From the sequence record OR699282.2: a stretch of DNA of 64,000 nucleotides; one strand, written 5' to 3'. Position numbers and translations under genes: made by a program. This document shows positions 1,774 to 49,704 of this stretch, piece by piece. The stretch's first letter is position 1, and each line of letters begins with the position of its first letter. The notes beneath the pieces were generated by a model that searched no databases, was not told the origin of the DNA, and saw only the letters and a list, made by a program, of their open reading frames with translations.

Positions 1774-4023
1774 TTAATCAACTATACTATCGTGACGTTT
1801 GAGTGCACGAATTACAATTGCAGCTTGAATTTGTTGTGTAAAAGAACCACCTGCACCAAAATCATGAACAATTTTATTAACACGATAAATTGTTTGGTTA
1901 AATGTGGTTGGTGTATTAATATCCAAAACACCAGTGTTATCATTTATTGATATTACTGGTTGTAATTTTAGTAATAGATACGCTTCAGATGTTATATAAT
2001 TTGCTACATGATAATCATCTGGGTTAATTTCCATATCTTCACCATTAATTACTTGTTCTAGATATTGTAAGTAAGAGTAATCACTCCACCCTAACCAGTA
2101 CGGGTCACCTACTACACGCATATCGAGTTTACACAAAAAAGGTCTATTGTAATAGTTGTCACGTATTTTACGTCTATCCATTTCATATGTGCTGCTGTTA
2201 TCGTTTAACGAAGCGGATAAAGTTGTTTCATTGTTAGTTGCTTCGGTTGGCATTGTGAACACTTCACCATAACGGTGACCAACACCATCAGTGCCACCAT
2301 CGTTTTCTTCATAAGTGGTTACATAATCTTCAATATATTGAGGTAAAACATTGACTTGATAGTTATTATAACGGTCTTGTTCTTCTGCGTTACCAACCTG
2401 CATTTGATTTTTTGCTAAAGTTTCAACTTCAGTTAACAATTGTTGTTGGGCTTGTGTTAACATCCCTCCTAAATCACGAGTTACACGTAAATCACTTGTT
2501 TTTGCCCATGCGTCTGGTATACTATTGTATTGTACACCTTGAATATTGAGTTCTTGGGATGTATGTGTACCTGCATGGTTCGCTACATCTTGTATCGGAC
2601 CAGGGTTACGTGTAGTGGCTACGAAAAATTGCTGATCAAATTTCAAATCCAAATCAAGTATCTCACTATTAAGCCCACTAAATTGATAATTATAAGTTTT
2701 CATGTTTATTTTTGGTTTTTGATCATTAGGATCTACGTATTTTTCTGCGTTCTCAAAAAAGTACTCAAATGTGAAATTTTCAGGTTGTAAATCCGATTCA
2801 TGAACAATATCACCTATTTTAAATCTAACAATATAAAAAATTACTTTATAAACAGAAGTATTACGATAATTATCAAAACCAACGTATTGTTTAACTGGTA
2901 TAATGTTTACAAATTGACGCACACTAGTACTATCATCGGCTTGTACAGTACATGTATCAATAACGTCATCAATAATTCGAGATATAGGAGTACTTGGGTT
3001 CCATGAAAAGTTTTTAGAACCTTGTGCACCACTTTTAGTTGTTCCGGCCTCTGCCATTTGTTTAGAATCATAGTTTATAAACAAATCTTGCAAATCAGGT
3101 GCTACTTTAAATTCGAAAAATTTACCTTCGGATAATTCACCAAATTTATATCTAAGATAACCATATTGTTGGTCAGCCATCTGATTTAATTTATCTTCTA
3201 AATCAAAGCAGAAGTCACCAAAGTTTTCAGCAGTACAATTGAATGGTTCTTTTAAGGTCCATTCAATGTTATCAACTAAAGCTGCTCTATTATGAACTAA
3301 GTTCATAGTATACATCATAGTACTACCACTTTGTGAAGCACTTGCAGTAACACTATTAATTTTAACTGACCAGCGTCTTGTTGTTTCTGGGATAATTTCA
3401 GGTATTCCATTTTTATTAAAGCCAATAAACTTTAATTCCAAGATCAATGGCAAGTCCATAAATTTATGATATCTAAGTTTGTTACTTAACGAAATTAATT
3501 CATCATATAGACTCATACTATTATTTTCAGACATATTAAGTACTGCTGTATTAAAACAATAGTTTGTTGTCATTCCTGGTGTTGAAGGTCCAGCTTGTGT
3601 CATTTGTACACTAGTGATATTATATTTGCCAGTAACACCACTTTCTGATATCACATGTCGTTGCACTTCTGCATCTGGGTAAAGCCAAAAGTTTTTAAAA
3701 TCATCTTTATCTAAGGCAAATAAACAAAAGTGCCAAGTTGGGTTATCATATTTCAATAATTTATTGTCATACGGTATTACAAACTGACTTAAATCGAGAT
3801 CTTCATAAACTTGATCAACACTAGCACTTTGTTTTGGTAATGATACTACATTACTTACATTTGCTTTGTAATTATTTTTTGTAATAGTTTTTACATCATT
3901 TTGTAATGTATTTGCTGTAGCTTTCAAACTATCAAGTGCATTAGATGTGGTGGTTTTAGCCTTACCAGTAATACTTGTAATATCATTTTGAAAATTATCA
4001 ACTGTACTTCGTAAATCTGCCAT
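1774..4023 (-). CDS. Large virion/baseplate hub protein (gp27-like position)
   Basis: 749-aa ORF between the gp5-like and gp53-like genes; C-terminal LDMRVVGDPYW...YRVNKIVHDF..G.FTQ resembles hub proteins. Confidence 0.5.
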   Translation of the reverse strand: MADLRSTVDNFQNDITSITGKAKTTTSNALDSLKATANTLQNDVKTITKNNYKANVSNVVSLPKQSASVDQVYEDLDLSQFVIPYDNKLLKYDNPTWHFCLFALDKDDFKNFWLYPDAEVQRHVISESGVTGKYNITSVQMTQAGPSTPGMTTNYCFNTAVLNMSENNSMSLYDELISLSNKLRYHKFMDLPLILELKFIGFNKNGIPEIIPETTRRWSVKINSVTASASQSGSTMMYTMNLVHNRAALVDNIEWTLKEPFNCTAENFGDFCFDLEDKLNQMADQQYGYLRYKFGELSEGKFFEFKVAPDLQDLFINYDSKQMAEAGTTKSGAQGSKNFSWNPSTPISRIIDDVIDTCTVQADDSTSVRQFVNIIPVKQYVGFDNYRNTSVYKVIFYIVRFKIGDIVHESDLQPENFTFEYFFENAEKYVDPNDQKPKINMKTYNYQFSGLNSEILDLDLKFDQQFFVATTRNPGPIQDVANHAGTHTSQELNIQGVQYNSIPDAWAKTSDLRVTRDLGGMLTQAQQQLLTEVETLAKNQMQVGNAEEQDRYNNYQVNVLPQYIEDYVTTYEENDGGTDGVGHRYGEVFTMPTEATNNETTLSASLNDNSSTYEMDRRKIRDNYYNRPFLCKLDMRVVGDPYWLGWSDYSYLQYLEQVINGEDMEINPDDYHVANYITSEAYLLLKLQPVISINDNTGVLDINTPTTFNQTIYRVNKIVHDFGAGGSFTQQIQAAIVIRALKRHDSIVD

Positions 4024-4034
4024 ACGTTACTCCA

Positions 4035-4349
4035 TTAGCCTATGTTTCGAGTACCATTAAGATAATTCTGTACTCTTTGATTTGCTGGTATTCTAATTGT
4101 TACTCCACTTTTAAAATTATATATAGGATCTTCTCCTAGTATGTCTGGATTTAACAATGCGAAAATATAATATAAGCGTTCATTACCATACATTTCGTAT
4201 GCTAAACGCCAAGGTTGATATTCATATTTCAATGGGATCTCATAAAAATCATCAGTATCAGCCGGAACAATATCACGTGGTAAATTATACCCAAGATACC
4301 ATGTTTGTTTCACCTTAGCGTAAGGTGAGTATTGACTATAGTTGGACAT
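4035..4349 (-). CDS. gp53-like/LysM-like baseplate wedge protein
   Basis: 104 aa with YEYQPWRLAYEMYGNERLYYIFALLNP...G..IRIP, the pattern of gp53/tail-X proteins. Confidence 0.7.
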   Translation of the reverse strand: MSNYSQYSPYAKVKQTWYLGYNLPRDIVPADTDDFYEIPLKYEYQPWRLAYEMYGNERLYYIFALLNPDILGEDPIYNFKSGVTIRIPANQRVQNYLNGTRNIG

Positions 4350-5080
4350 TAAATGAATCCTCCTTTACGTAATAGTTCACCACGTTTGAATGCATTGAGG
4401 TTGAACGTTTTAGTCATATAATCCGATGTTGGTTGTTCTTCAAGTTGTAACATAACTGAGATTTTTTGTGGAACCCAAACTTCATCTTGTGGGTTCATAT
4501 ATCCAGTACTTCTAAGTTGTTCGAAGAATTTTCTACTATCCATGTCGGATAAATTAAAAGTACTATCGCTACTATTCAACGGAACTTGAATATAAGAAAC
4601 ATCATTTGGGTAAGTAAAATTATAAGATTTTAAAATAACAGGAATATCATTATATGTATAACGACCATATCCACTTAGAAGTAAGATTGGTGGTGGTGCA
4701 CCTGCAATTGCGAGTTCGGGGTTATTAGCCGAAGCAGCTTGTCTACCAAAATCCATCAACGAAACAGAACGTATAAAATGAACACATGCCAACGCATACA
4801 TAGCTTCTGCTGCGGTATTCGCATAAAATTCACCCTGAATCGTGAAAACTGTATTAGTAGTGTTCTTATAGTTGTTATAGTTACTGTTAGTATGTATAGG
4901 GGACTGTGTTTCATACTGAATTGACCTTTGTTCAGTAATTGTTGGTGTTACAGTCCAAACCAACCCATTAGTTGGACGCAGAAACGAAAGTAGAGTTGGT
5001 TCGGAGCTATCTCCAAAATCACCATATACATAGTTAGCACCTGCGGCTTTAGGTCGTAATCGAATTCTACGATCAATCAT
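4349..5080 (-). CDS. Baseplate tail-tube initiator/cap-like protein (gp48/gp54-like)
   Basis: Likely start ATG 5080 (MIDRRIRLRP) with GGAG upstream and TATAAATA at 5116-5123. PPILLLSGYGRYTYNDIPVILKSYNFTYP is a tube-fold signature. Confidence 0.6.
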   Translation of the reverse strand: MIDRRIRLRPKAAGANYVYGDFGDSSEPTLLSFLRPTNGLVWTVTPTITEQRSIQYETQSPIHTNSNYNNYKNTTNTVFTIQGEFYANTAAEAMYALACVHFIRSVSLMDFGRQAASANNPELAIAGAPPPILLLSGYGRYTYNDIPVILKSYNFTYPNDVSYIQVPLNSSDSTFNLSDMDSRKFFEQLRSTGYMNPQDEVWVPQKISVMLQLEEQPTSDYMTKTFNLNAFKRGELLRKGGFI

Positions 5081-5115
5081 CTTTTTGATTCTCCATAATA
5101 AGGGAACATTTGATG

Positions 5116-24658: not shown

Positions 24659-27600
24659 ATGTATATCGATGCTTATATGGAACGTAAACGTACTGGTGAT
24701 ATTCTTCATGTAGTTGAACGTAAGAATGGTAAACGTATTCTACGCGAATTAGATCCAGTATATGAATATTATGTTGAATCCCCACAAGGAACACATAAAA
24801 CTGTTTATGGTACAATGGCTAAACATTTTGAGTTTCAAACTCAAGCTCAAATGAATAAAAGTGTAGAGCAACACAAAAGTGAAGGTCTACGTATTTTTGA
24901 AAGTGATTGTAACATTACATTTAAAACATTAGCTAAAGAATATATGGGAAAAGGTTCACCAGATTTGAACATCGTGTTCTTCGATATCGAGACTGATTTC
25001 CATAAGAAATTTGGTTATGCTCCACCATCAGACCCGTTTAACCGAGTAACCGCTATTTCTCTATATCAATCATGGACTGGAAAGGATTATGTACTTACTT
25101 TACCACCTGCTGATATGGAAATTTATGAAGCACAAGATATTGTTCGCCAACTAAATGAAGAAACAAACGATCCTAACAGTACTGTAATTTTATATACAGA
25201 CGAAAAGGAAATGTTTATGGAATTCTTTAGTTTAATTGATGATTCTGATGTTATTTCAGGATGGAATAGTGAATTCTTTGATATTCCATATATGATCAAT
25301 CGAACTAAAAAAATCTTCAATGAAGCAACAACTGCTCGTTGGTGTTTATGGAATAAAAAACCAAATTCACGTGAAGCAGACAATTTTGGTAAAACTGTTC
25401 AAACATATGATCTGGTAGGTCGCGTCCATCTTGATTATTTGGCTTTGTATAAGAAACATGCTGGTCAAGTTGAACAATCTTATAAACTAGATTATATTGC
25501 TGAAAAAGTAACTAAAGAAAATAAAGTATCCTATGAAGGTTCATTGGATAAACTTTACAGAGAGGATTACATTACTTTCTTGCGTTATTCTAAACAGGAT
25601 AGTATTCTTCTTAAAAAGATTGATGCTAAATGTGACTATATCAACCTACACAATCGACTTGCACACAAAGAATGTGTACTTATCAGTACAACAATGGGTT
25701 CAGTAGCACTAATCGACACTGCTATTATCAACTTAGCACATACTCGTGGTGAAGTTGTTTTCAACAAAGCACCGAAAGATGATCTTGAGTTTGATCCAGA
25801 AATGGAATATTATGGTGAAGATGGTGAAGAAGAAGATGAGAAAATTAGTGCAAAAGCAGCAGGTGCATGGGTACAAGATCCAGTACTAGGACTTGTAAGT
25901 GACCTTGGGTGTACTGACTTTAACTCTCTTTACCCTACTGTTCTACGTACTTTGGGTATGAGTACTGAATGTATTCTTGGTCAATTACGTCAAGATTACA
26001 CCGATGCGTATCTTGCAGCTAAAATCCAAGAACAGAAGAACAAATCTAAATCTAAATCATTTGAACCAGATTGGACTGCGGCATGGCATGGTTTATTTGC
26101 TGCTGTTGAATTTACAATGGTTCATGAAAAGTCAGAAGAAACATTGATTGTTGATTTAGAAGATGGGAGTTCTTTTAAAGCAACGGGTAAAGAGCTATAT
26201 GATATTATTTTTGCAGAAGATAGTACTATTGTACTTAGTGCAAACGGAACACTTTTTGATAAGTCTAAGTCTGGTGTAATTCCTGACATTCTAACTCAAT
26301 GGTATTCAGAACGTAAAGCACAGCAAAAAATGGTCATTGACTACAAACATATGTATACTGATGGTTGGGAGTTTAATGGCTATGAAAAAGTTGAACCACT
26401 ACTATCAAACTATACCCCTGGTACAATGTTTAGAACTAATATTCATGATAATGATCCTGTATACTTACTTCGTAAAGAAATTGGTAAAGGACAGTGGGAT
26501 GAAGTTGCTAAGTTGATTGTAGAAAACGGATTAGTACTAAAAGATGGTCGTATTTTCTGTCCTAAAGAAGAAAAAGATTACTTCAAACAACGTAGTGCTT
26601 TCTGGAAACAGAACCAACAGATTCGTAAGATTCTTCTAAACAGTCTATATGGTGCACTATTGAACAAAGGTTCTCGTTTTTTTGACAAACGTTTAGGTCA
26701 ATCCGTAACATTAACTGGACGTTCTATGACCAAACATATGGCAAGTCGTATCAATGAAATTACTACTGGTGTATATAACCACCAAGGTGGTTCAGTAATT
26801 TATGGTGATACTGACTCAGTTTACTTTAGTGTAACTCATTATCTGAAAGAACAAGGTATTCCATATAATCTATCTAAAGAAGAGATTGTTGATATGTATA
26901 TTAAAATTGGTGAAGAAGTTGGTGAATCTTTCCCATCATTTATGCATGAGATGTTCAACACTGGTATTGAAAAAGGTAAGATTGTTGGTGCAGACCTTGA
27001 GATGGTTGGTTCGCGTGGCCTATTCTTGAAGAAAAAACGTTATGCAATTCTGAAGTACTGGGAAGATGGGTTCCGTAAAGATATTGATGGTAAACCAGGT
27101 GAAATCAAAGCGATGGGTCTTGAAATTAAACGCTCAGACACGCCAAAATACATCCAGAACTTCCTAGAAGAGACTCTAATCGCATTACTGGTAGGTGAGA
27201 GTGAACAACAGCTAAAACAGCGTGTACGTGAGTTTAAGGACGTATTTAAGGATATGCCTGTACATGAAAAAGGTTCACCAAAAACTGTAAAAAACTACAC
27301 TAATTTAGAGGCTGAATATCAGCTAACTGGTAAGTGTAAAGTTGGTCACGTTCTTGCTGGTATCCAATGGAACCGTCTACGTGAAGTTTATGATGATAAA
27401 TCTGTTCCAGAAGTAACAGATGGAACAAAAGTAATTGTCTGTAACTTAAAAGATAATCCTATGGGAATTAAAGCTGTTGGTTATCCAATTGACTGTGTTG
27501 AGTATCTTCCAGAATGGTTCTTGGAACTACCATTCGATACTGAAAAAATGGAAGAGATTGTTCTAACTAAAAAATTAGAGAATATTTTTGGTATTTTGGA

Positions 27601-27664
27601 TATGGATATTGGTATTCATGAAAAAAGTACTGCGTCAGTAAACAATGGATTCTTCACTTGGTAA
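24659..27664 (+). CDS. Family B DNA polymerase (gp43-like)
   Basis: Exonuclease motifs DIET, GWNSEFFDIPY, YSKQD; polymerase motifs DFNSLYP, KILLNSLYG, YGDTDS, KKKRY. Confidence 0.96.
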   Translation: MYIDAYMERKRTGDILHVVERKNGKRILRELDPVYEYYVESPQGTHKTVYGTMAKHFEFQTQAQMNKSVEQHKSEGLRIFESDCNITFKTLAKEYMGKGSPDLNIVFFDIETDFHKKFGYAPPSDPFNRVTAISLYQSWTGKDYVLTLPPADMEIYEAQDIVRQLNEETNDPNSTVILYTDEKEMFMEFFSLIDDSDVISGWNSEFFDIPYMINRTKKIFNEATTARWCLWNKKPNSREADNFGKTVQTYDLVGRVHLDYLALYKKHAGQVEQSYKLDYIAEKVTKENKVSYEGSLDKLYREDYITFLRYSKQDSILLKKIDAKCDYINLHNRLAHKECVLISTTMGSVALIDTAIINLAHTRGEVVFNKAPKDDLEFDPEMEYYGEDGEEEDEKISAKAAGAWVQDPVLGLVSDLGCTDFNSLYPTVLRTLGMSTECILGQLRQDYTDAYLAAKIQEQKNKSKSKSFEPDWTAAWHGLFAAVEFTMVHEKSEETLIVDLEDGSSFKATGKELYDIIFAEDSTIVLSANGTLFDKSKSGVIPDILTQWYSERKAQQKMVIDYKHMYTDGWEFNGYEKVEPLLSNYTPGTMFRTNIHDNDPVYLLRKEIGKGQWDEVAKLIVENGLVLKDGRIFCPKEEKDYFKQRSAFWKQNQQIRKILLNSLYGALLNKGSRFFDKRLGQSVTLTGRSMTKHMASRINEITTGVYNHQGGSVIYGDTDSVYFSVTHYLKEQGIPYNLSKEEIVDMYIKIGEEVGESFPSFMHEMFNTGIEKGKIVGADLEMVGSRGLFLKKKRYAILKYWEDGFRKDIDGKPGEIKAMGLEIKRSDTPKYIQNFLEETLIALLVGESEQQLKQRVREFKDVFKDMPVHEKGSPKTVKNYTNLEAEYQLTGKCKVGHVLAGIQWNRLREVYDDKSVPEVTDGTKVIVCNLKDNPMGIKAVGYPIDCVEYLPEWFLELPFDTEKMEEIVLTKKLENIFGILDMDIGIHEKSTASVNNGFFTW

Positions 27665-37133: not shown

Positions 37134-38186
37134 ATGAAATCTCTAGCTGAAATTCGTGCACACCTAAAAGCAGAACAAGAAAAAGCAGAAGCTCAAAAGA
37201 ATGGTACATTTACTGGCGAGCGTAAAGCTGATTCGTTCTTAGCTTTCTGGAACGTACCTTATAACGAACCACTAAACCTACGTTTTCTACCAGATGCAGA
37301 TGAGTCTAACCCATTCTTCTGGCGTGAACGTGACATGATTAACCTAACTTTCAATGGTGTAGTCGGTATGCACACTGATAAAGTTACCGTTCAAGTACCT
37401 TGTAACGAAATGTGGGTTCCTAAATCCTGTCCGGTTCTGAAAGAAGTACGTCAATGGTTCCAAAGTGCGAATGAAACAGGGAACGAAGAACTAAAAGCAA
37501 TGGCTGGTCGTTACTGGAAGAAGAAAACCTATCTAATGCAATGTTTTATTGCTCCTGATAGCGTTGCAGTAAAAGACGACATTGCACCAGAAAATCCAAT
37601 TCGTCGTATTCTGGCTAACAAAGATATCTTTGATAAAGTTAAATCCATCCTGCTAAACCCAGGCATCAAAGAGTCTCCAACTCACTACGTTCAAGGTCGT
37701 GATTTTGGTATTGTTAAAACTAAGAATGGTGGTGGTTATAATAGCTACGACATGTCTCAATTCTCCATGTCTGAGCGTCCACTAAACGAAGAAGAACTAG
37801 CAGCAATTGAAAAATATGGCCTATACAATCTAAATGATTTTATGCCAAAACAACCAACTCCAGAAGAGTTGAAAGCAATTGAAGAAATGTTCGAAGCATC
37901 AGTAAATGGTGAAGCATATGATCCAGCACGTTGGGCATTTGCATATCGTCCAGCAGGTGTACCAAAACCTAACTCTGGAACTGTTACTGAATCAAAACCA
38001 ACTCCTGCTCCAGTACAACAAGAGTCAGCACCTGCACCAGTAGCACCTACTGCTCCAGTTACACCAGCCCCACAAGCTGCTCCAGTAACTCCAGTCGCTA
38101 CCCCAGCAGCAACCACTCCTGAAGCACCAAAAGAACAACTATCTGCATCTGCACTAGTTGCTCGTTTGAAACAACAAGGTAAGTAA
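37134..38186 (+). CDS. Single-stranded DNA-binding protein (gp32-like)
   Basis: LRFLPDAD..NPFFW, VPC..MW...CPVL, RYWKKKTY, GRDF..K; Pro/Ala-rich tail. Confidence 0.88.
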   Translation: MKSLAEIRAHLKAEQEKAEAQKNGTFTGERKADSFLAFWNVPYNEPLNLRFLPDADESNPFFWRERDMINLTFNGVVGMHTDKVTVQVPCNEMWVPKSCPVLKEVRQWFQSANETGNEELKAMAGRYWKKKTYLMQCFIAPDSVAVKDDIAPENPIRRILANKDIFDKVKSILLNPGIKESPTHYVQGRDFGIVKTKNGGGYNSYDMSQFSMSERPLNEEELAAIEKYGLYNLNDFMPKQPTPEELKAIEEMFEASVNGEAYDPARWAFAYRPAGVPKPNSGTVTESKPTPAPVQQESAPAPVAPTAPVTPAPQAAPVTPVATPAATTPEAPKEQLSASALVARLKQQGK

Positions 38187-38255: not shown

Positions 38256-39374
38256 ATGAAAATGACAAGTGGTTTTGCGAACATTCTTAAAAACAGTACT
38301 GGTAGTGTTAAAAAGAATACTGGTGTTAGTGTTGGTTTTCATGATCCAGATACATGGGTTAGTACTGGTAACTATGCACTAAATTATCGCATCAGTGGCT
38401 ATTTTGACCGTGGTATCCCACTAGGCAAAGTAACGATGTTTGCTGGTGAATCAGGTAGTGGTAAATCTTTTATCGTATCTGGTAATATTGCACGTGAAGC
38501 TCAAAAACAAGGCATCTTTGTTGTTATGATTGACTCAGAGAACGCATTGGATTCAGATTGGCTTCAAGCACTTGGTGTTGACACTTCTGAAGAAAAACTT
38601 TTGAAAGTCAATATGGGTATGATTGGTGACGTTGCAAAATTCACCTATGAGTTCATTGAAGGATATCGTAAAGAATACGAAAATACACCTAAAGATGAAC
38701 GTCAAAAAGTATTGTTTATTATTGATTCAATTGGTATGCTAAACACTGAAGTAGCCAATGATCAAATGAAAGCGGGTAACCTTAAAGGTGACATGGGTCA
38801 TAAACCCAAACAGCTTAAAGCATATATCACAAACTGTGTAAACTCTATTGGTTCATTGAACATTGGTATGGTTTGCGTTAACCACAGTTATGAATCTCAG
38901 GACATGTTTAACCCAGATCCTAAAGTTTCAGGTGGTAGTGGCTTGATTTATGCTTCATCTATGGTTATCGCAATGGGTAAATTAAAACTTAAAGAAGATG
39001 AAGACGGAAATAAAACTTCCGAAGTAAATGGTATTCGTGCTAAATGTAAAGTCATGAAGACTCGTTACAACAAGCCGTTCGAAGATGTAGAAATTAAAAT
39101 TCCTTGGGATAAAGGTATGGACCCACGTAGTGGTCTACTAGATATGTTTGAAAAATACGGTCTAATCACTAAATCAGGTAACCGTCTATTGTATGTTGAT
39201 ATTGTAACTGGCGAACAGATTCTAAAATATCGCAAAGAGTGGATGCGTAATGAAGATTCATGTCTTGATTTGGTAATGCATCAATTTAAAAATCATCCTT
39301 TGATTGAAGAAGTTAAAGAAGAAGAAAAAGGTGATGAAACTTTTGGTACTGATGTGGATATTAGTGAGGAATAA
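38256..39374 (+). CDS. uvsX: RecA-like recombinase
   Basis: STGNYALN, GESGSGKS, IDSENALD, IIDSIG, SGGSG. Confidence 0.93.
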   Translation: MKMTSGFANILKNSTGSVKKNTGVSVGFHDPDTWVSTGNYALNYRISGYFDRGIPLGKVTMFAGESGSGKSFIVSGNIAREAQKQGIFVVMIDSENALDSDWLQALGVDTSEEKLLKVNMGMIGDVAKFTYEFIEGYRKEYENTPKDERQKVLFIIDSIGMLNTEVANDQMKAGNLKGDMGHKPKQLKAYITNCVNSIGSLNIGMVCVNHSYESQDMFNPDPKVSGGSGLIYASSMVIAMGKLKLKEDEDGNKTSEVNGIRAKCKVMKTRYNKPFEDVEIKIPWDKGMDPRSGLLDMFEKYGLITKSGNRLLYVDIVTGEQILKYRKEWMRNEDSCLDLVMHQFKNHPLIEEVKEEEKGDETFGTDVDISEE

Positions 39375-39835
39375 TGAAACCTTGGCATTGGATTATCAAA
39401 GATGATAAATCTAAAATTATTGAAATGATTGAGTTCTTTAACAAAGAAGTTGAAGAAGCTCGTCGTGAAGTAAAGAAGATTGGCATCATTGAAAAAATTG
39501 CTCAAGAGATTCCTGGCTGGCATGAGACGCGTCTAAGCCAGCTTCAAGAACTTGAAGCAGTATTGGAAATGTTAGAAATTGAAATGCGTCAGGTACAAGC
39601 CGAGAAGTTCAAATACTTTCTCGAAGGATACCGCCGTGCACTATCTTCATCTGACTGTAAAAAGTATGTTGAAGGTGATAAAGATGTTTGTGAGTTAGCA
39701 GAACTTATAAACGAGGTATCTTATATAAGAAATACATATTCAAGTATTGTTAAATCCTTAGAGATGAAAGCTTTTCAGTTAAACAATATTGTGAGACTAC
39801 GTGCCGCTGGTATTGAGGATGCACGTTTAGAATAA
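39374..39835 (+). CDS. uvsY: Recombination mediator
   Basis: Helical, RALSSSDCKKYVEGD, KAFQLNNIVRLRAAGIED; follows uvsX. Confidence 0.8.
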   Translation: MKPWHWIIKDDKSKIIEMIEFFNKEVEEARREVKKIGIIEKIAQEIPGWHETRLSQLQELEAVLEMLEIEMRQVQAEKFKYFLEGYRRALSSSDCKKYVEGDKDVCELAELINEVSYIRNTYSSIVKSLEMKAFQLNNIVRLRAAGIEDARLE

Positions 39836-39882: not shown

Positions 39883-40701
39883 ATGACAAAATTAAATGAG
39901 TTTTTATCAAATGTAGCAGTTCTAGATACTGAAACTACTGGGGTTGAGAGTGAAGATGATATTATTGAATTTAGTATCTCGTATCCACATACTTCACATG
40001 AAAACATTGATACTATTGATAACTATACATTGAGATACAAACCCTTGAAAGATATTCCACCAGAGGCATCTGCTGTGCACTTTATCAGTACTGAGGATGT
40101 AGCTAATTGTGTTGGGTATAAAGATGATTTAGATAACATTGATGCACTTATGGGATGCCGTAAGTATTTTGTTGGTCATAATGTACAATTTGACCGTAGA
40201 ATGATGGTAGATAACGAATATAAATATCGTAACTCAATTTCACAGTACTTACTTGATGAAAATAAATGGATTTGTACCCTTCGTCTTGCTAAGAAAATGT
40301 TCGCAGAAGATATTGAATTTAAAAACTTAACTCTAAGTTATTTGTGGTATAAGTTTGGATGTTATCGTGATGTTCATCGACCTGTTAATGCACACGCAGC
40401 AAAAGACGATGTGTTTATGTGTTATCAGGTTCTAATCAAATTAGTTGAAATTGCAATCGAACGTGGACATATCGAATCTAATGGTGATATTGGTGAGCAA
40501 ATTGTAACTTTCTGCAACACACCAATGCGTTATCAATTCATGCCATTTGGTAAACACAAAGGTGAGCCAATGAGTACAGTTCCATTGAATTACATTGAAT
40601 GGATGATTACTAATAGTGACATTTTAGATGCAAGTAACCCTAACTGTGATAAAGATTTAGTATATACATTTGAGTACGAATATAATACTCGAACTAATTA
40701 A
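39883..40701 (+). CDS. DnaQ-like (DEDDh) 3'-5' exonuclease, ExoX-like
   Basis: LDTETTG, GHNVQFD, HAAKDD, C-terminal MPFGKHKG..VP.NYIEW. Confidence 0.85.
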   Translation: MTKLNEFLSNVAVLDTETTGVESEDDIIEFSISYPHTSHENIDTIDNYTLRYKPLKDIPPEASAVHFISTEDVANCVGYKDDLDNIDALMGCRKYFVGHNVQFDRRMMVDNEYKYRNSISQYLLDENKWICTLRLAKKMFAEDIEFKNLTLSYLWYKFGCYRDVHRPVNAHAAKDDVFMCYQVLIKLVEIAIERGHIESNGDIGEQIVTFCNTPMRYQFMPFGKHKGEPMSTVPLNYIEWMITNSDILDASNPNCDKDLVYTFEYEYNTRTN

Positions 40702-40716
40702 TAAAGGTAATCATGG

Positions 40717-42201
40717 ATGAAAACTTGTAAGTTAACCTTATTGGATGAGGTGAATTGTAAATTTGAGGGACTTGATCCCTCAATTAGACAAAAGATGATT
40801 CGTGCAACTGAATATGTGTTACCATATGCAAAGTTCACACCAGCAGGACGTATTGGACGTTGGGATGGTAAAGTTCAGTTTATGAATTTAGGCGGGACAA
40901 CTTATTATCATATGTTAGATAAGTTATTGCCTATTCTTGATGAAGCTAAGATTGACATTGAATTAGTAGATCATAGGGTAGATTATGGATTTAAATTTGA
41001 CCCCATTGATGAAGATATTTTTAGTGATGTTGTATTCGGTGCAGGACACCACATGGAAGGTAAATCCATAAAACTACGTGAACATCAAGTTAATGCGGTT
41101 AATGCATGTTTGGCTAATCCACACGGACTGCTATTGGCAGCGACTGGTGCAGGTAAAACTCTCATTACTGCTGCATTGTCAAAGAAAGTGCAAGAGTATG
41201 GACGTTCTGTTATAATAGTACCAAGTACTGACTTAGTACAACAAACATATGATGACTACATTATGTGTGGGTTGGATACTGGCATGTTCTATGGTTCACA
41301 AAAAGATTTTGGTCACCAACATACTATTACGACTTGGCAATCATTTAACTCTCTATGGAAGAAAACCAAGAAAGGTGAAATTGAATTAACTGAACAAGAC
41401 GTGAATGATTTTATCGATGGAGTAGTTTGTGTTATCGTTGATGAGTGTCAAGGTGCAGGCGGTGACGCATTAGTTCAAGTACTTTCTAAAGTTATGAATA
41501 ACGTACCATTACGTTGGGGTCTTACTGGAACAATTCCTAAAGATCCGGTAGTTGCCGCGAAAATCAAATGTAATGTTGGTGATGTTATATTTAAAATAAC
41601 TGCAAAGGAATTACAAGATAAACAAATACTAAGTACATGTAATGTGAATTGCATCAAACTAAAAAGTAGTATGAAGTTTGCATCATATGCTGAAGAGTTG
41701 AAATACTTAGTAACTGACAGAGATAGGATGGCATATGTAGCGTCATTGATATCTGCGTTATCTGAATCAGGAAACACTTTAGTTTTAGTAGATAGACTTG
41801 AAGCAGGTGAGTTGCTATGTGAATTTTTAGGCATTCCCAAATCAGAATTCGTTCGTGGAGAAACTAAAAAGAAAGATCGAGAATCATCTTATGGTGAAAT
41901 TCGTTGGGCTGATAATAAAATACTTATTGCGACATACGGCGTTGCCAGTACTGGTATTAGTATTTCAAGGTTATATAATGTAGTATTGATTGAGCCAGGA
42001 AAAAGTTTTGTAAGAACTATACAGTCAATTGGACGTGGATTACGCCGAGCAGAAGATAAAGACCACGTAGAAATATATGATATTAGTGGTTCTAATAAGT
42101 ATAGTGCTAAGCATTTACGAGAACGTTTAGCTTACTATAAGGAAGCACAATATCCTCATAGTATAATAGATGTTAAAGATTGGGAAAACACAGCGGGATA
42201 A
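40717..42201 (+). CDS. uvsW: SF2 DNA helicase
   Basis: LREHQ, ATGAGKT, VDEC, GLTGT, QSIGRGLR. Confidence 0.92.
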   Translation: MKTCKLTLLDEVNCKFEGLDPSIRQKMIRATEYVLPYAKFTPAGRIGRWDGKVQFMNLGGTTYYHMLDKLLPILDEAKIDIELVDHRVDYGFKFDPIDEDIFSDVVFGAGHHMEGKSIKLREHQVNAVNACLANPHGLLLAATGAGKTLITAALSKKVQEYGRSVIIVPSTDLVQQTYDDYIMCGLDTGMFYGSQKDFGHQHTITTWQSFNSLWKKTKKGEIELTEQDVNDFIDGVVCVIVDECQGAGGDALVQVLSKVMNNVPLRWGLTGTIPKDPVVAAKIKCNVGDVIFKITAKELQDKQILSTCNVNCIKLKSSMKFASYAEELKYLVTDRDRMAYVASLISALSESGNTLVLVDRLEAGELLCEFLGIPKSEFVRGETKKKDRESSYGEIRWADNKILIATYGVASTGISISRLYNVVLIEPGKSFVRTIQSIGRGLRRAEDKDHVEIYDISGSNKYSAKHLRERLAYYKEAQYPHSIIDVKDWENTAG

Positions 42202-42694: not shown

Positions 42695-43192
42695 ATGAAC
42701 GTATTAACACCTGAAAATAATTCTTTTGACATGGATTTAGTAACAGAACATATCCCTGAAGAAATGTATTGTGTTTTGGATCTAAGCCCAAATGGTGAAT
42801 CTGATTTTTATTTTAGACATATTCTAAACACCGTATCATTTAATAGTATTAGTGCTGATCTTCAAATTGGTGAAAAGATTATTCAAGTGCCTCTAGGATG
42901 GCAAATTATGTTAGGTGATGAAGAAACTGGTATGGTTGAGATGTGTACAATTGAAAACATTCTTAACATGAAAGAACCAAAAGCTTTTGTTTACAATCCT
43001 ATCCGTTCAATGTATCCTAAGTTTGAACCAGTCAAAGTACTACGTGTATTTGCATTAACTACAAAGTGGCAGATACCAATGTTACCTAAAAAGAATTTAC
43101 TATGCGTCCCACTACATAGTGGTGAAAATCCACCATGTGTGTACTTTGCAGATGAAAACGAAAAAATTCAAGATTTGTATCTAGGAGTATAA
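42695..43192 (+). CDS. Beta-rich hypothetical protein
   Basis: AAGGAG RBS; 165 aa. Confidence 0.65.
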   Translation: MNVLTPENNSFDMDLVTEHIPEEMYCVLDLSPNGESDFYFRHILNTVSFNSISADLQIGEKIIQVPLGWQIMLGDEETGMVEMCTIENILNMKEPKAFVYNPIRSMYPKFEPVKVLRVFALTTKWQIPMLPKKNLLCVPLHSGENPPCVYFADENEKIQDLYLGV

Positions 43193-43196
43193 AATA

Positions 43197-44042
43197 GTGT
43201 TTGATTTCAGTGATATTAAAAATAAGTCGGTCGATGATGATGAAAAACCAACACAGCATTCTTTTTCTATTGCTGAATTTCTAAAACACATTGACCGTGC
43301 TGATTATAAGTACTATAATGACATGACCGAAAAAGAACGAAAAGAGTTTACTCCATATACTGTTTTGCGATGGGTAAGCTCTTTAGATGATTCGTTACAA
43401 GTAACCTACCCTAGTAGTAAAGTTGAAAGTGTATTTGGAAAATGGAAATCTGGTGGTAAAGAAGCACTGACTGAACTAGTTACTGAATTAAAGTCTTCAG
43501 GGACAAATGTTTCATCAGTAACTAAGTACTGTCATAGTGATTATGATTGGCGTATTAAATTTGCAGTCCAATCAAAAGATGACGCACAAAAATTAATATC
43601 CTCAATGGTCGAATTTGGCGTATCAGGTTCCGAAATTGTTTCATTAGTAGATACTGAAGTTGTCAAATACCAACTTATTATGCTAAATGATATGGTTAAT
43701 GATGGATTTTGGGATATGAAAGAACATCCAGAATTAGTATATCAGCTTATGTGTTCAGTCCATGATATGATTGGTGGACAAGAAATGCCACGTAACTGGT
43801 TAAACTTTTCTAAGAATTTCAAAAAGGCAAATAACGAATTATTTGAGTTAATTAAAAGCTCACAACCTGATACTATATCTACTCAAATGAATGAAGATGA
43901 GTACAAAATTGTTCTATTGCAGTATGATAAAAAAACATTTGAGACATTTCTTGACAATAATGGTTTTCAAGATAATGAAAAGAAATCTATGATGAAATTG
44001 TTTAAAGAAGAATGTAAAAAATATGGCAAAGAAATCAAGTAA
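43197..44042 (+). CDS. Possible clamp-loader small subunit-like protein (gp62-like)
   Basis: Y..MTEKERKEFTPY..LRWVS and VN..FWDM.EHPEL..QL patterns recalled from T4-like phages; weak. Confidence 0.4.
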   Translation: MFDFSDIKNKSVDDDEKPTQHSFSIAEFLKHIDRADYKYYNDMTEKERKEFTPYTVLRWVSSLDDSLQVTYPSSKVESVFGKWKSGGKEALTELVTELKSSGTNVSSVTKYCHSDYDWRIKFAVQSKDDAQKLISSMVEFGVSGSEIVSLVDTEVVKYQLIMLNDMVNDGFWDMKEHPELVYQLMCSVHDMIGGQEMPRNWLNFSKNFKKANNELFELIKSSQPDTISTQMNEDEYKIVLLQYDKKTFETFLDNNGFQDNEKKSMMKLFKEECKKYGKEIK

Positions 44043-44733
44043 TAAAGTATATACCTGTAGATTTTGTGATCGTGAATTTAAACGTGAAGAAACTGTAAAC
44101 ACACATAAATGTATAAAACGTGACCGATACGAAGACCGCCAAAGCCGCCAGATGATGGAGGCTTTTCGTATATATATGCAATTTATGGAATTGAATAAGT
44201 TCCCATTTAAAAAAGGCGTAGAGCCTTTTATTGCTTTTATAAAGTCAAAGTACTTTAATGATTTTTATAGTTTTGCCGAATACTATTTGAATAATAGAGA
44301 TATTATTAATGTGGACGAGTTTGTAAAGTACTTGATTATCAATAACAAACCAATCACGGAATGGAGTACATATAAAGCAAAAGATGAATGGATATTAAAA
44401 ACAATTCGTGCCGAGCACCCAAAAGAAGCAATTGCAAGAAGTGTTATCTCACTGGTTGAATGGGCTGAAAATTTGAATGTACAATGGAATACTTTCTTTG
44501 AAAATGTAAGTTCTGCCCGTGCAATTGCATGGATTGAGAGTGGTAAAATTTCACCTTGGATTATCTGGCTTGCTCCTAAAAAAAGTACTAATAAGTTTTT
44601 TAAAAAACTATCAAACTCAGAAATTGAATATATACTTAAATACATCGATCCAAGTTATTTTGAAATCAAAACTATAAAATACAAAAAGGATTGTGATGAA
44701 ATTAAGATTATGCTATGTGAGGCAGGATTATGA
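44023..44733 (+). CDS. C2H2 zinc-finger hypothetical protein
   Basis: YTCRFCDREFKRE....THKC at the N-terminus. Confidence 0.6.
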   Translation: MAKKSSNKVYTCRFCDREFKREETVNTHKCIKRDRYEDRQSRQMMEAFRIYMQFMELNKFPFKKGVEPFIAFIKSKYFNDFYSFAEYYLNNRDIINVDEFVKYLIINNKPITEWSTYKAKDEWILKTIRAEHPKEAIARSVISLVEWAENLNVQWNTFFENVSSARAIAWIESGKISPWIIWLAPKKSTNKFFKKLSNSEIEYILKYIDPSYFEIKTIKYKKDCDEIKIMLCEAGL

Positions 44734-45059
44734 ATGGAAAAAGTATATATAATAAAATACCAGAAGGGTATGTACCTGTACCTAAAGAACAAAAATCAAA
44801 ACAAATATCTCTACTTAGACAAGGATCTATTACTGAAATAACTTTAGATGGTAAAACATTTCAAGTTCATGATCCTGCTCGTATTGAAAAAATTATTTCT
44901 TTGGTAGAAAGACACGAAGAACGCTTTTTCAGTTTAAGTCAAGAATTGGCAAAGACAAAACAAAATTGTAGATTATTAGAGAATCAAATATCAACTTTGA
45001 CTAATACAGTTAAACAGTTACAGGAGCAAATAAAAAATGCAGGATTCGACCGATTCTAA
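44730..45059 (+). CDS. Coiled-coil hypothetical protein
   Basis: Coupled ORF with heptad pattern. Confidence 0.6.
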   Translation: MNGKSIYNKIPEGYVPVPKEQKSKQISLLRQGSITEITLDGKTFQVHDPARIEKIISLVERHEERFFSLSQELAKTKQNCRLLENQISTLTNTVKQLQEQIKNAGFDRF

Positions 45060-45675
45060 ACATTATAGAAAAGCCCGAACTGATATTGACATTGACTTCA
45101 AGGATAGTAAAAGCGTAATCGCTAAACTTCCATGTGTGCGAAGTACTGAAAAAATTACGGAGGATGGTTTAATCCCCCATAATAGTGGTGTTCATTTTGA
45201 TAATATACCTATTGATCCAATCACTGGATTGGCAAGTATACAATATAAAGAAGCTGAAAGGTTAGGGTATCAAAAAGTTGATATTCTTTCACAGTCAGCT
45301 TACATGTATGTTCGTGATAGAGAGCATTTAAAAGAACTAATGAATCAGGAACCAAATTGGGATCTATTGTTAGAACCCGAAATTGTAGAACATCTATCGC
45401 AAATTAAAAAACATGTAACTTTATTAAATGTATGGAAGCCTAAATCTATAGACGAACTAGCAATGTTTATTGCAATGATTCGCCCAGGAAAAAGGCAGTG
45501 CCAAAGTATGAACACATGGGACGAAGTTAAAGCTACCATATGGGATTATAGTACTATAGGCACTGACCAAGCAGGAAATAAATTACGATATTTCAAAAAG
45601 CCACATGCTTACGCATATAGCTTAATGATTGTTGTACAACTAAATGCTTTAGTTGAACATCTTACTTCTTCTTAA
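45037..45675 (+). CDS. Minimal family C (DnaE alpha-like) polymerase core
   Basis: TDIDIDF, HNSGV, GYQKVDIL, IAMIRPG, FKKPHAYAY motifs. Confidence 0.75.
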   Translation: MQDSTDSKHYRKARTDIDIDFKDSKSVIAKLPCVRSTEKITEDGLIPHNSGVHFDNIPIDPITGLASIQYKEAERLGYQKVDILSQSAYMYVRDREHLKELMNQEPNWDLLLEPEIVEHLSQIKKHVTLLNVWKPKSIDELAMFIAMIRPGKRQCQSMNTWDEVKATIWDYSTIGTDQAGNKLRYFKKPHAYAYSLMIVVQLNALVEHLTSS

Positions 45676-46015
45676 GAGCCACATTACGACGCTTGATGCG
45701 TTTCTGTGGCAAATTGCTTAAAGAAACTACTGGACCACATACGAAATTCACCGACGGTGTATCGAATCTCTGTGTGTACGGTTCAAATTTCTCCATCTCT
45801 TCTTGAAAGAATAGACAAACTGGAATGGTTCTATTACTTTGCCACCACCAATCGTGTGCTATACCTAACAATTCGTCTTGCATTGAATCATCCATATCAT
45901 CGAAACAGTAAAGAGTTGTATACTGTTTGCTTTTGATTTTGATGATACCAACAAACGTTTTACCATCATACTGGATTACAGTAATGAATGGTGGAATAGT
46001 GTTATATTGATTCAT
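45662..46015 (-). CDS. Hypothetical protein
   Basis: 117 aa, WWWQSNRTIP..F motif; convergent on the polymerase fragment. Confidence 0.65.
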   Translation of the reverse strand: MNQYNTIPPFITVIQYDGKTFVGIIKIKSKQYTTLYCFDDMDDSMQDELLGIAHDWWWQSNRTIPVCLFFQEEMEKFEPYTQRFDTPSVNFVCGPVVSLSNLPQKRIKRRNVALKKK

Positions 46016-47105: not shown

Positions 47106-48161
47106 ATGAACGCTGTACAAAACATAATGGCACAAATTATGAATGATCCAGTACCTGCGATTGGTACATGGTCACAACACAACTGTCCAGCTTGTGTGTT
47201 CAGAGGACATTCAAGGCCGGATACAAAGCACCGTGGTAATCATATGTTCAATGCAGATGGTTCCGTTTCATATAACTGCTTTAACTGTAGTTTAAAAACT
47301 GGTTGGCAACCAGGAAAATATATGAGCAAAGATATGGAGTCTTTGCTCATTTCTTTTGGTGCACAAGATAAAGAAATAGAATTAGTTAAGTTTTATATTA
47401 AAGAAATGGTTGACAGCGGTGATTTTGCTGCACAAGAAACTGTTGCATCAAAATTGTATGACCGAGTAACAGTACGTGATTTGCCATCAAATGCAAAAAC
47501 ATTTTGGGAATGGGCTTCTTTACCTGAAGATAAAATTCCACAAGAATTTATAAGTGTTTTGCATAATGTCAATGAAAGAAACCCATATCTGTTAGACTTA
47601 GAATTATATTGGTCACCTAATAAAGAACATAAAATGTATGACAGATTTATTATTCCATATTTCATGAATGGTAAAATTATTGGTTATACTGCACGACATA
47701 AATTAAAAGATCCTGGAAGTACATACAGGTTCATAAATCAAGTAAGTACTAATATACTATATAACTATGATTTATTAAAAGATGAACGAATAAAAACAAT
47801 TTTAGTATGTGAGGGTCCGTTAGACGCAGCATTAATGGGTGGTGTATCTGCTAATAACTTTAAATTATCAAACGTACAGATTGATGTATTAAAAGATGCA
47901 CAGCAAAAAGGTAAAAAAATAGTTATTGTTCCAGATAGAGATAAAGATGGATTAATAACTATAGACCAAGCACTTGAAAATGGATTCAGTGTTTCCTTCC
48001 CAGACTTTGGTGCTGTAAGAGAAGGTAGTACAATACGTCATATCAAAGACTTTGAAGAAGCTTGTGCACGATTTGGTAGGTTATTTTGTTTACAATTAAT
48101 ACATGATAGTATAGTAGATGAGCCATTTTATATTAAAGCTCAAACGGATAAATGGATGTAA
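47106..48161 (+). CDS. DNA primase (gp61-like)
   Basis: Zinc finger CPAC...CFNC, IIPY, TOPRIM VCEGPLDA and PDRD. Confidence 0.9.
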   Translation: MNAVQNIMAQIMNDPVPAIGTWSQHNCPACVFRGHSRPDTKHRGNHMFNADGSVSYNCFNCSLKTGWQPGKYMSKDMESLLISFGAQDKEIELVKFYIKEMVDSGDFAAQETVASKLYDRVTVRDLPSNAKTFWEWASLPEDKIPQEFISVLHNVNERNPYLLDLELYWSPNKEHKMYDRFIIPYFMNGKIIGYTARHKLKDPGSTYRFINQVSTNILYNYDLLKDERIKTILVCEGPLDAALMGGVSANNFKLSNVQIDVLKDAQQKGKKIVIVPDRDKDGLITIDQALENGFSVSFPDFGAVREGSTIRHIKDFEEACARFGRLFCLQLIHDSIVDEPFYIKAQTDKWM

Positions 48162-48183: not shown

Positions 48184-49704
48184 ATGATTCAAAGCACAGT
48201 GGATGTGAAACAATATGGGATTAATGCACAACAATACTTATTATCTCAGATTTTCAGTAATCCTGATTTATATGTACGTTGTAAAAATATCCTTAAACCA
48301 GAATATTTTGATAAAACATTTCATGAAAGTATTCAATACGTGCATGATTATGCTGCAAAATATAGTTCATCACCTACTTTGAAAGATATTGAAGTTAAAG
48401 GTGGTTATCAATACGATCAATATGAAGTTCAAGAATTACATAAACAATCAGTACTTGATACATGTGGTGAATTTTGTCGTCATAAAGCATTAGCGTTAGC
48501 CGTTGAAAAAGGAATGGAACTTGTCCATCAGAAAAAATATGGTGGAATCGAAGAACTAATCCGAGAAGCAATGTTGGTAACGGTACAGAATGAGTTAGGT
48601 TTGGACATTTTTGAAAACCCTGAAGATACAATCCGCTCACTCAGTACAATGCAAGGGTCATTTAAGAGTGGTTGGGAAACTCTTGATTACAAACTGTTCG
48701 GTGGATTTGGGCGTAGAGAGTTAGAGATCTTTGCTGCTGCATCAGGTGGTGGTAAATCAGTAGTACTGCAAAATTTAGCAGTTAACTTTGCGAAAGCTGG
48801 TATGAATGGTGCATACATTTCACTTGAACTAGCTGAAGAGTTGGTTGCTGTTCGTATCTATGGTATGATGACTGAATCAAAACTCAGTAACGTAAAAAAT
48901 GAAGCTGAAAAGATTGGATTTGCTGTTAAAGTTGAAGGTAAAAACAGTGGTATGTTGCGTATTAAACGCTTACCTGAATCTGTAACAACCACAGACGATA
49001 TTGAAAGTTATCTACGTGAATTACAAATTAAGATGGAAATCAAACTTGATTATGTATGCGTGGACTATTTGGATCTATTAACTTCTAATCGTCTTGGACC
49101 AAATGATAAATCCAATACATTTACTAAAGATAAATTTGTATCAGAAGAATTACGTGCTCTTGCATCCAAAATGGATTTGACTGTTTTCACTGCATCTCAG
49201 TTTAACCGTAGTGGTATGGACGAAGATAAGAAAAGTCAAAGTCAGATTGCTGGTGGTATTTCAAAAATTTATACTGCTGATAACGTAATTTATATTGAAG
49301 CAAAAAAAGAAACTGGCGAACTATGGTTTGATTTCCAAAAAACACGTAACAGTAGTGCAGTAGGTTCCCGTTTGCGTATGTCATATGATATTGATTCATT
49401 GAGAGTTCTTGACCACGCAACTACAGTACAACAAATGGAAACCGAAGGTAATGGATTCCGTCACAGCGGTGTTTCTAAGATTGGTGGAGGGAACATGGCG
49501 TTACCACCCAGCACTATGCAAACATTACGTCATTCGCTTTCTGGTGCAGCTAAATCACCATCTGTGCAACCTGACAATACAGTAACACTAAATACTGATA
49601 GTGCTCCTAACTCTACGACACAAAACGAAATACAGAATCCACAGACACATGCTGGTACTGATCGTGTTCATGCAATGAAGCAATGGTTAAATCAAAGGAA
49701 ATGA
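48184..49704 (+). CDS. Replicative helicase (gp41-like)
   Basis: ASGGGKS, ISLEL, VDYLDL, TASQFNR, KTRNS. Confidence 0.92.
   Translation: MIQSTVDVKQYGINAQQYLLSQIFSNPDLYVRCKNILKPEYFDKTFHESIQYVHDYAAKYSSSPTLKDIEVKGGYQYDQYEVQELHKQSVLDTCGEFCRHKALALAVEKGMELVHQKKYGGIEELIREAMLVTVQNELGLDIFENPEDTIRSLSTMQGSFKSGWETLDYKLFGGFGRRELEIFAAASGGGKSVVLQNLAVNFAKAGMNGAYISLELAEELVAVRIYGMMTESKLSNVKNEAEKIGFAVKVEGKNSGMLRIKRLPESVTTTDDIESYLRELQIKMEIKLDYVCVDYLDLLTSNRLGPNDKSNTFTKDKFVSEELRALASKMDLTVFTASQFNRSGMDEDKKSQSQIAGGISKIYTADNVIYIEAKKETGELWFDFQKTRNSSAVGSRLRMSYDIDSLRVLDHATTVQQMETEGNGFRHSGVSKIGGGNMALPPSTMQTLRHSLSGAAKSPSVQPDNTVTLNTDSAPNSTTQNEIQNPQTHAGTDRVHAMKQWLNQRK

Follow-up and report, generated by a model that had tools for sequence, protein, structure and literature searches.

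Two distant genes of RaK2-like jumbo phages probably encode a single split, minimal family C DNA polymerase

We analysed a 64,000-nt stretch of DNA (hereafter the window) from Escherichia phage BAU.Micro_ELP-22 (OR699282.2), an Asteriusvirus and RaK2-like jumbo coliphage that is a group 2.2-type host, and conclude that the product of the ORF at positions 45037-45675 on the + strand is probably the C-terminal subunit of a minimal polymerase of family C (Pol III alpha-like) that is made from two genes and is typical of the RaK2-like 'group 2.2' phages. Window positions equal OR699282.2 record positions minus 186000; window 40000-50000 matches record positions 226000-236000 with 100% identity. 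The kind of enzyme is already known from comparative genomics since 2021, when a "split minimal DNA polymerase III alpha" was described from jumbo phages of group 2.2, which also have a family B polymerase and lack any further Pol III domain; it was suggested that the split enzyme might help to make one of the strands or act in repair (Iyer, Anantharaman, Krishnan, Burroughs and Aravind, 2021, Viruses 13:63, PMC7824862). The pair analysed here (PHROG 11778 and 11127) is the same system, consisting of a stand-alone Mg2+- and template-binding C-terminal protein and a distant N-terminal NTP-binding protein. To this description we add confident models, the exact junction (E. coli ~394), conservation at the level of residues, the distances between the halves (11-182 kb), the conserved flanking genes, and the occurrence of the system in a 141.6-kb non-jumbo phage. 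A search of the literature found no biochemical or genetic work on any member of the family; the split phage polymerase treated in a 2026 preprint is an unrelated chimallivirus enzyme, and the omics paper on PA5oct does not mention the gene of the C-terminal subunit.

As read from the sequence, the ORF encodes a protein of 212 aa, here called the C-half. An AGGAG ribosome-binding site (45022-45026, + strand) lies 10 nt 5' of the ATG, and the start overlaps the 3' end of the preceding ORF (44730-45059) by 23 nt, in agreement with the intact ribosome-binding site and coupling reported in an initial annotation of this DNA. That annotation had also quoted a series of polymerase motifs, all of which are present in the translation: TDIDIDF (residues 15-21), HNSGV (48-52), GYQKVDIL (77-84), IRPG (148-151) and FKKPHAYAY (186-194). 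The family PHROG 11778 'DNA polymerase', which comprises proteins of ~197 residues, matches the C-half end to end with an E of 2e-108, far beyond chance.

An alignment of 52 homologues with 41-89% identity to the query revealed that residues D16, D18, D20, H48, G51, P58, G77, K80, D82, R149, P150, K152, H190, Y194, Q201 and N203 are invariant, while the first ~13 residues are unconserved. The aspartate triad D18, D20 and D82, whose conservation the initial annotation had put forward as a check, is thus retained down to 41% identity. The DxDxD element D16-I-D18-I-D20 (codons at 45082-45096, + strand), which aligns with residues 413-424 of Mycobacterium tuberculosis DnaE1 (5LEW), corresponds to PDFDVDF of E. 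coli alpha and MPDIDIDF (413-420) of M. tuberculosis DnaE1, the catalytic metal ligands. K80-V-D82 (45274-45282, + strand), aligned with the KMDFLG stretch of 5LEW, corresponds to the K-x-D of KFDFLG/KMDFLG, with D82 as the third catalytic aspartate. Two further motifs belong to the fingers, namely the 'RPG' motif R149-P150-G151-K152 (45481-45492, + strand), aligned with YRPG of 5LEW, and K188-P189-H190 (45598-45606, + strand), in which K188 is conserved in at least 90% of the homologues and which aligns with residues 773-787 of 5LEW and corresponds to K-S-H of FNKSHA. We take D18, D20 and D82 to correspond to D401, D403 and D555 of E. coli alpha; R149 would presumably correspond to R709/R710 and K188/H190 to K758/H760, with H190 at the site where, in PolC and DnaE, a histidine packs against the sugar.

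Homologues of the C-half were found by tblastn in 96 phage records, at identities of 32-100%, including RaK2, GAP32, CBB, PA5oct, Xoo-sp13 and RsoM2USA. A word search returned 785 protein clusters for the C-half and 121 for its partner described below, a gap that reflects the retrieval of candidates and not abundance. Four wastewater metatranscriptome runs yielded short contigs that cover segments of 44894-45717, such as 45199-45349 and 45504-45717; these libraries may contain DNA, and strand and level are unreadable from them. Scanning for promoters and terminators gave sites no more numerous than in shuffled sequence.

When compared with cellular enzymes as a single sequence, the C-half gave only a sub-threshold Pfam match to DNA_pol3_finger (residues 129-162, E 0.045) and no NCBIfam match. 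Its best single-sequence match in the PDB was a dynein chain (E 0.35), which we took as chance. The profile of the C-half family, compared with M. tuberculosis DnaE1 (5LEW), produced four collinear stretches at a PDB profile E of 0.16, pairing DIDID with MPDIDIDF (413-420), GYQKVDFL with GLLKMDFLG, MIRPA with LYRPGPM, and YFKKSHAIAY with AFNKSHAAGY. Because these sequence scores to cellular Pol III (E 0.045 and 0.16) are weak, the kinship rests mainly on the collinearity of the motifs and on the predicted fold.

In support of the family C assignment made in the initial annotation, AlphaFold2 modelled the C-half with a pLDDT of 93.6 and a pTM of 0.80, and the first 13 rows of a Foldseek search with this model were all Pol III alpha or PolC. 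Foldseek assigned weak E values (2e-3), an effect of targets five times as long as the query, and the match was settled by VIA-align, which superposed 201 of the 212 residues on Taq Pol III alpha 456-841 (Z 9.7). Further matches were obtained with M. tuberculosis DnaE1 414-811 (Z 9.5), PolC 966-1299 (Z 9.3) and E. coli alpha 394-784 (Z 8.4); rows of Pol III alpha and PolC ranged from Z 9.7 to 5.8, against 4.2 for the best unrelated fold. Since the 212 residues of the C-half span what needs ~390 in E. coli alpha (394-784), thumb and fingers have been cut to about half and the thumb is nearly gone, which bears out the heavy shortening noted earlier. Sequence and model comparisons together indicate that the C-half is a true relative of bacterial Pol III alpha. 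The description of the ORF as a 212-aa minimal family C polymerase thus stands as regards the family; it does not stand as regards a self-contained enzyme, as the protein makes up no more than half of the catalytic core. It also lacks the opening part of the palm, a point absent from the initial annotation.

[quoted passage not shown] In the nearest of the genomes compared (G001; 348,532 bp, 121Q-like), Pfam DNA_pol3_alpha (PF07733) matches a single short frame with an E of 3e-10. The frame is 180 aa long in G001, most homologues start at M9 and are thus 172 aa long, and the protein, here called the N-half, ends in ...GLGRGSSVASY...ELDVNEFLKW-stop. It represents the piece of the Pol III palm that immediately precedes PDFDVDF, and holds the triphosphate-binding GRGSS. 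NCBIfam searches with the N-half gave DnaE matches only, all far sub-threshold. The same gene is present in OR699282.2 on the same strand as the C-half (match at record positions 261988-262524; CDS 262009-262527, 'DNA polymerase'), 30.3 kb downstream of the C-half at a position equivalent to window ~76,009 and so beyond the window, within which tblastn found no N-half. Among 54 homologues with 31-94% identity, G137, G139, R140, G141, S142, S143, V144, S146 and Y147 are invariant, and in 50 of the 54 the protein ends 0-4 residues after ..EFLK.

The N-half was modelled with a pLDDT of 86. Alignment of this model placed residues 78-172 on E. coli alpha 278-394 (Z 10.2) and on M. tuberculosis DnaE1 306-414 (Z 10.9), and gave Z 7.2 with PolC ~823-966. 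The junction between the two proteins is exact: the N-half stops at E. coli alpha residue 394, and the C-half aligns from residue 394. Within the Pol-beta-like nucleotidyltransferase core, the GS-type triphosphate loop is on one side of the break and the DxD strand on the other, and the three catalytic aspartates and the GS triphosphate loop of the Pol III palm are provided only by both phage proteins together. Since the break lies inside the core, the models predict that neither protein should be active alone, a complete active site being present in neither. Residues 1-77 of the N-half (G001 ~44257-44487) form a confidently modelled small alpha/beta domain that occupies the place where PHP joins the palm in cellular enzymes, and that did not align with Pol III or with any other chain compared.

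The initial annotation had considered that the missing domains might be encoded elsewhere as a split DnaE. This is what we found for the palm, in the form of the 172-aa gene 30.3 kb downstream, and not what we found for PHP. Searches of G001 at E up to 10 returned no match to PHP (PF02811), with the positive control found in 14 of 14 genomes, and a search for HhH (PF14579, HHH_6) likewise returned no match in G001, with positive controls found in 14 of 14. The earlier statement that accessory domains are missing is therefore upheld for PHP, and can be extended to HhH.

The two halves occur together. Genus tallies for the C-half (96 records) and the N-half (94 records, tblastn) are nearly identical, and Agrobacterium phage Atu_ph07 (490 kb) carries both halves 182 kb apart. 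Outside the jumbo phages, Alishewanella phage Slickus01 (OQ508957.1, 141,644 bp) carries both halves ~11 kb apart (C-half 68346-68957, N-half 79808-80038) plus a family B polymerase, and its C-half retains all motifs. In this phage the family B domain is distributed over two frames, 578 and 322 aa long (3596-4198 and 4339-5100), which could reflect a split gene, a frameshift or an intervening element. Among ten large divergent IMG/VR contigs the N-half was found in five, including the sole 100%-complete one, and the five contigs that lacked it were 18-79% complete. Both halves were thus present in every complete genome tested, and the N-half was missing only from incomplete contigs. The distance between the halves varied from ~11 to 182 kb, always on the same strand, and in none of 80 related IMG/VR loci, inspected with at most 10 kb on either side, did we find an N-half near the C-half or an ORF containing both. 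Assembly by a split intein was ruled out: no intein-sized extension is present at the junction, and each gene has its own start and stop.

We then compared the gene neighbourhood of the C-half across the same 80 loci, taking as much as 10 kb on either side if the contig reached that far. Upstream in the window lies a replication/recombination module with genes for SSB (37134-38186), UvsX (38256-39374), a UvsY-like mediator (39374-39835), a DnaQ/epsilon-like 3'-5' exonuclease (39883-40701, + strand; Pfam RNase_T E 6e-15, NCBIfam epsilon-like models below cut-offs) and a superfamily 2 helicase (ResIII/DEAD; 40717-42201, + strand; Pfam ResIII E 1e-16), the last being present in 55 of the 80 loci. 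The exonuclease gene, which is situated 4.3 kb upstream of the C-half and whose product has an ExoX-like C-terminal stretch, was found in only 3 of the 80 loci, all close relatives, and so is no conserved partner of the minimal Pol III; a role as proofreader is possible. Four unknown proteins are encoded between the superfamily 2 helicase and the C-half in the window. These include h165 (165 aa, 42695-43192, + strand; PHROG 11279), found in 59 of the 80 loci, and h281 (281 aa, 43197-44042, + strand; PHROG 11758), found in 53. Neither gave a Pfam match, and the h165 family profile matched nothing in the PDB. A third, h236 (236 aa, 44023-44733, + strand; PHROG 11058), is upstream of the C-half in 75 of the 80 loci. 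Its residues 5-28 form a single C2H2 zinc finger of the classical type, the family profile matching C2H2 fingers in the PDB with an E of 7e-7, and a domain of ~200 aa with no recognised fold makes up the remainder; an Atlas look-up with h236 returned viral hypothetical clusters only. Slickus01 encodes a positional analogue of h236 with a similar finger (E 0.004).

On the other side of the C-half, the gene for h117 (117 aa, 45662-46015, - strand; PHROG 11637) is convergent with it, their 3' ends overlapping by 14 nt, and occupies the same place and strand in 78 of the 80 loci. W56-W58, N61 and R62 of h117 are invariant, as are K105, R106 and R109 of its basic C-terminal tail. Searches with h117 yielded no family match, no PDB profile match and no usable Atlas match, and BLASTP detected no similarity to its positional analogue in Slickus01. 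It might associate with either the polymerase or the primase. A virion protein gene separates h117 from a DnaG-type primase (47106-48161, + strand; PHROG 47 E 4e-31), which was found in 57 of the 80 loci, in most of them 1.7-2.1 kb downstream, and which is followed by a DnaB-like replicative helicase (48184-49704, + strand; OR699282.2 annotation) that lies downstream in 47 of the 80. The order helicase, h165, h281, h236, C-half, h117 (on the opposite strand), primase and DnaB is conserved at ~40% identity.

The N-half has a neighbourhood of its own, following topoisomerase II and lying three genes before the clamp loader. In OR699282.2 this block (262009-264573) comprises the N-half, a small hypothetical protein, a GroES-like 'head morphogenesis' protein, a hypothetical protein and the clamp loader, an order that is kept in Atu_ph07. 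Since the arrangement is common to Asteriusvirus and Atu_ph07, each half resides in its own conserved block related to replication. As stated in the initial annotation, the window also holds, besides the primase, a family B DNA polymerase of 1001 aa with an exonuclease domain (24659-27664, + strand; DNA_pol_B_exo1 E 4e-23, DNA_pol_B E 1e-21), which is presumed to be the main replicase.

Based on these observations, we propose that the two proteins form a heterodimer in which one palm is rebuilt from two chains. The C-half would supply the metal-binding residues D18, D20 and D82, with D16 and K80, and trimmed fingers with R149, K152, K188 and H190, while the N-half would supply helices and the GxGRGSS loop that holds the triphosphate of the dNTP. 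As no intein-sized sequence is present at the junction, the predicted assembly must be non-covalent. The pair is predicted to be a DNA-templated DNA polymerase that extends a primer-template with dNTPs. As the modelled enzyme has almost no thumb and no proofreading domain, and no HhH was found in G001, it should be distributive, and a distributive enzyme would be suited to short-patch synthesis, for example gap filling or the extension of primers, alongside the family B replicase. Its most likely role would be to extend primers made by the primase, or to fill gaps at the fork or in recombination-dependent replication, by analogy with Bacillus subtilis DnaE beside PolC or with eukaryotic Pol alpha; the primase and DnaB genes that neighbour the C-half likewise recall B. 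subtilis DnaE beside PolC. By sequence, the pair could be a replicase, a primer extender or a repair enzyme. A fuller proposal is that the two proteins make up an active DNA polymerase, which would be by far the smallest of family C, and that it acts as the primer extender of a hybrid replisome in which a bacterial-type Pol III core, DnaG and DnaB work with an archaeo-eukaryote-type family B replicase and PCNA/RFC; the conserved neighbours, the C2H2 zinc-finger protein and h117, might then stand in for the absent thumb or processivity functions in trans. We regard this proposal as tentative and would not expect it to hold in all its parts. T4-like phages replicate with a family B enzyme alone, which counts against a need for a second polymerase.

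We weighed three other explanations, each of which is less likely than a two-gene split polymerase. The initial annotation favoured a repurposed nucleotidyltransferase rather than a replicase, with the C-half acting by itself as a signalling-nucleotide synthase, in untemplated tailing or in DNA modification. The small size of the protein, the near absence of a thumb, the failure to find PHP or HhH in G001 and the presence of a full family B polymerase in the phage all agree with such a function. The C-half, however, lacks the GRGSS element, which a partner gene encodes in every complete genome tested, and the fingers residues that contact dNTP and template in Pol III are invariant. In addition, a PADLOC search for defence and signalling families gave no match at E up to 1, no CD-NTase-like fold was among the structural matches of the C-half, and the gene is embedded in a replication module. 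This part of the initial annotation is therefore not supported, and we consider a self-sufficient nucleotidyltransferase the least credible of the readings weighed here. Only slightly less remote is the idea that the pair is a non-catalytic remnant serving as a DNA-binding or scaffolding part of the replisome. Extreme loss of domains would be in keeping with it, as would a literature that holds no measured activity of the pair; against it, every catalytic or substrate residue that we checked is invariant in both halves, among homologues down to 31-41% identity, and these residues are kept in Slickus01 too, a pattern typical of an active enzyme.

An asymmetric replisome of family B and family C enzymes, in which the split enzyme would be the principal replicase of one strand (for example the lagging strand) instead of a short-patch accessory, is a more serious competitor, yet we still judge it unlikely. 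The possibility of one-strand synthesis was raised with the original description (PMC7824862), both genes reside in replisome modules (primase and DnaB by the C-half, the clamp loader by the N-half), and RaK2-like phages have the DnaQ-like exonuclease gene 4.3 kb upstream. The lack of a thumb and of any HhH match in G001 argues instead for low processivity, the DnaQ-like gene is absent from 77 of the 80 related loci, and the family B enzyme is a complete polymerase that includes an exonuclease domain. We therefore retain the two-gene split polymerase, with a short-patch role beside the family B enzyme, as the preferred reading.

Compared with the bacterial Pol III alpha (DnaE1) enzymes of E. 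coli (2HNH), Taq (3E0D) and M. tuberculosis (5LEW), the phage pair has in common a Pol-beta-like palm with GRGS, DxD and K-x-D, fingers with RPG and KSH, and the order of the fold. In contrast to the single chain of ~1,160 residues in cells, the phage enzyme consists of two chains of 172 and 212 residues, in which the 507 residues of E. coli alpha 278-784 are compressed to ~300 with the thumb nearly gone; unlike Pol III alpha, it carries the 77-residue phage-specific domain at the N-terminus of the N-half, and PHP and HhH were not found (G001). All scores of the phage halves are below the Pfam and NCBIfam cut-offs. PolC of Firmicutes (3F2B) shares the structural match, over 966-1299 to the C-half and ~824-966 to the N-half, but also contains clamp-binding parts, an OB domain at its N-terminus and a proofreading exonuclease inserted in the chain, whereas the phage enzyme is without a proofreading domain. 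The split DnaE of cyanobacteria resembles the phage system in that DnaE is encoded by two distant genes. The cyanobacterial halves, however, carry intein fragments and are ligated to a full-length chain, whereas the phage halves have no intein parts, the phage split falls inside the nucleotidyltransferase core, and the product is minimal.

Several GenBank records already name one or both genes 'DNA polymerase (III alpha)', and the C-half is often labelled 'hypothetical' or 'membrane protein' in databases. Its annotation should read C-terminal subunit of a split minimal Pol III, always alongside the distant partner gene. If active, the pair would represent a minimal catalytic core of the bacterial replicase family, with ~300 conserved residues against ~1,160, and would provide a tractable model for the working and the evolution of Pol III alpha. 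Its host phages would then possess a natural two-polymerase replisome that mixes bacterial and archaeo-eukaryotic parts.
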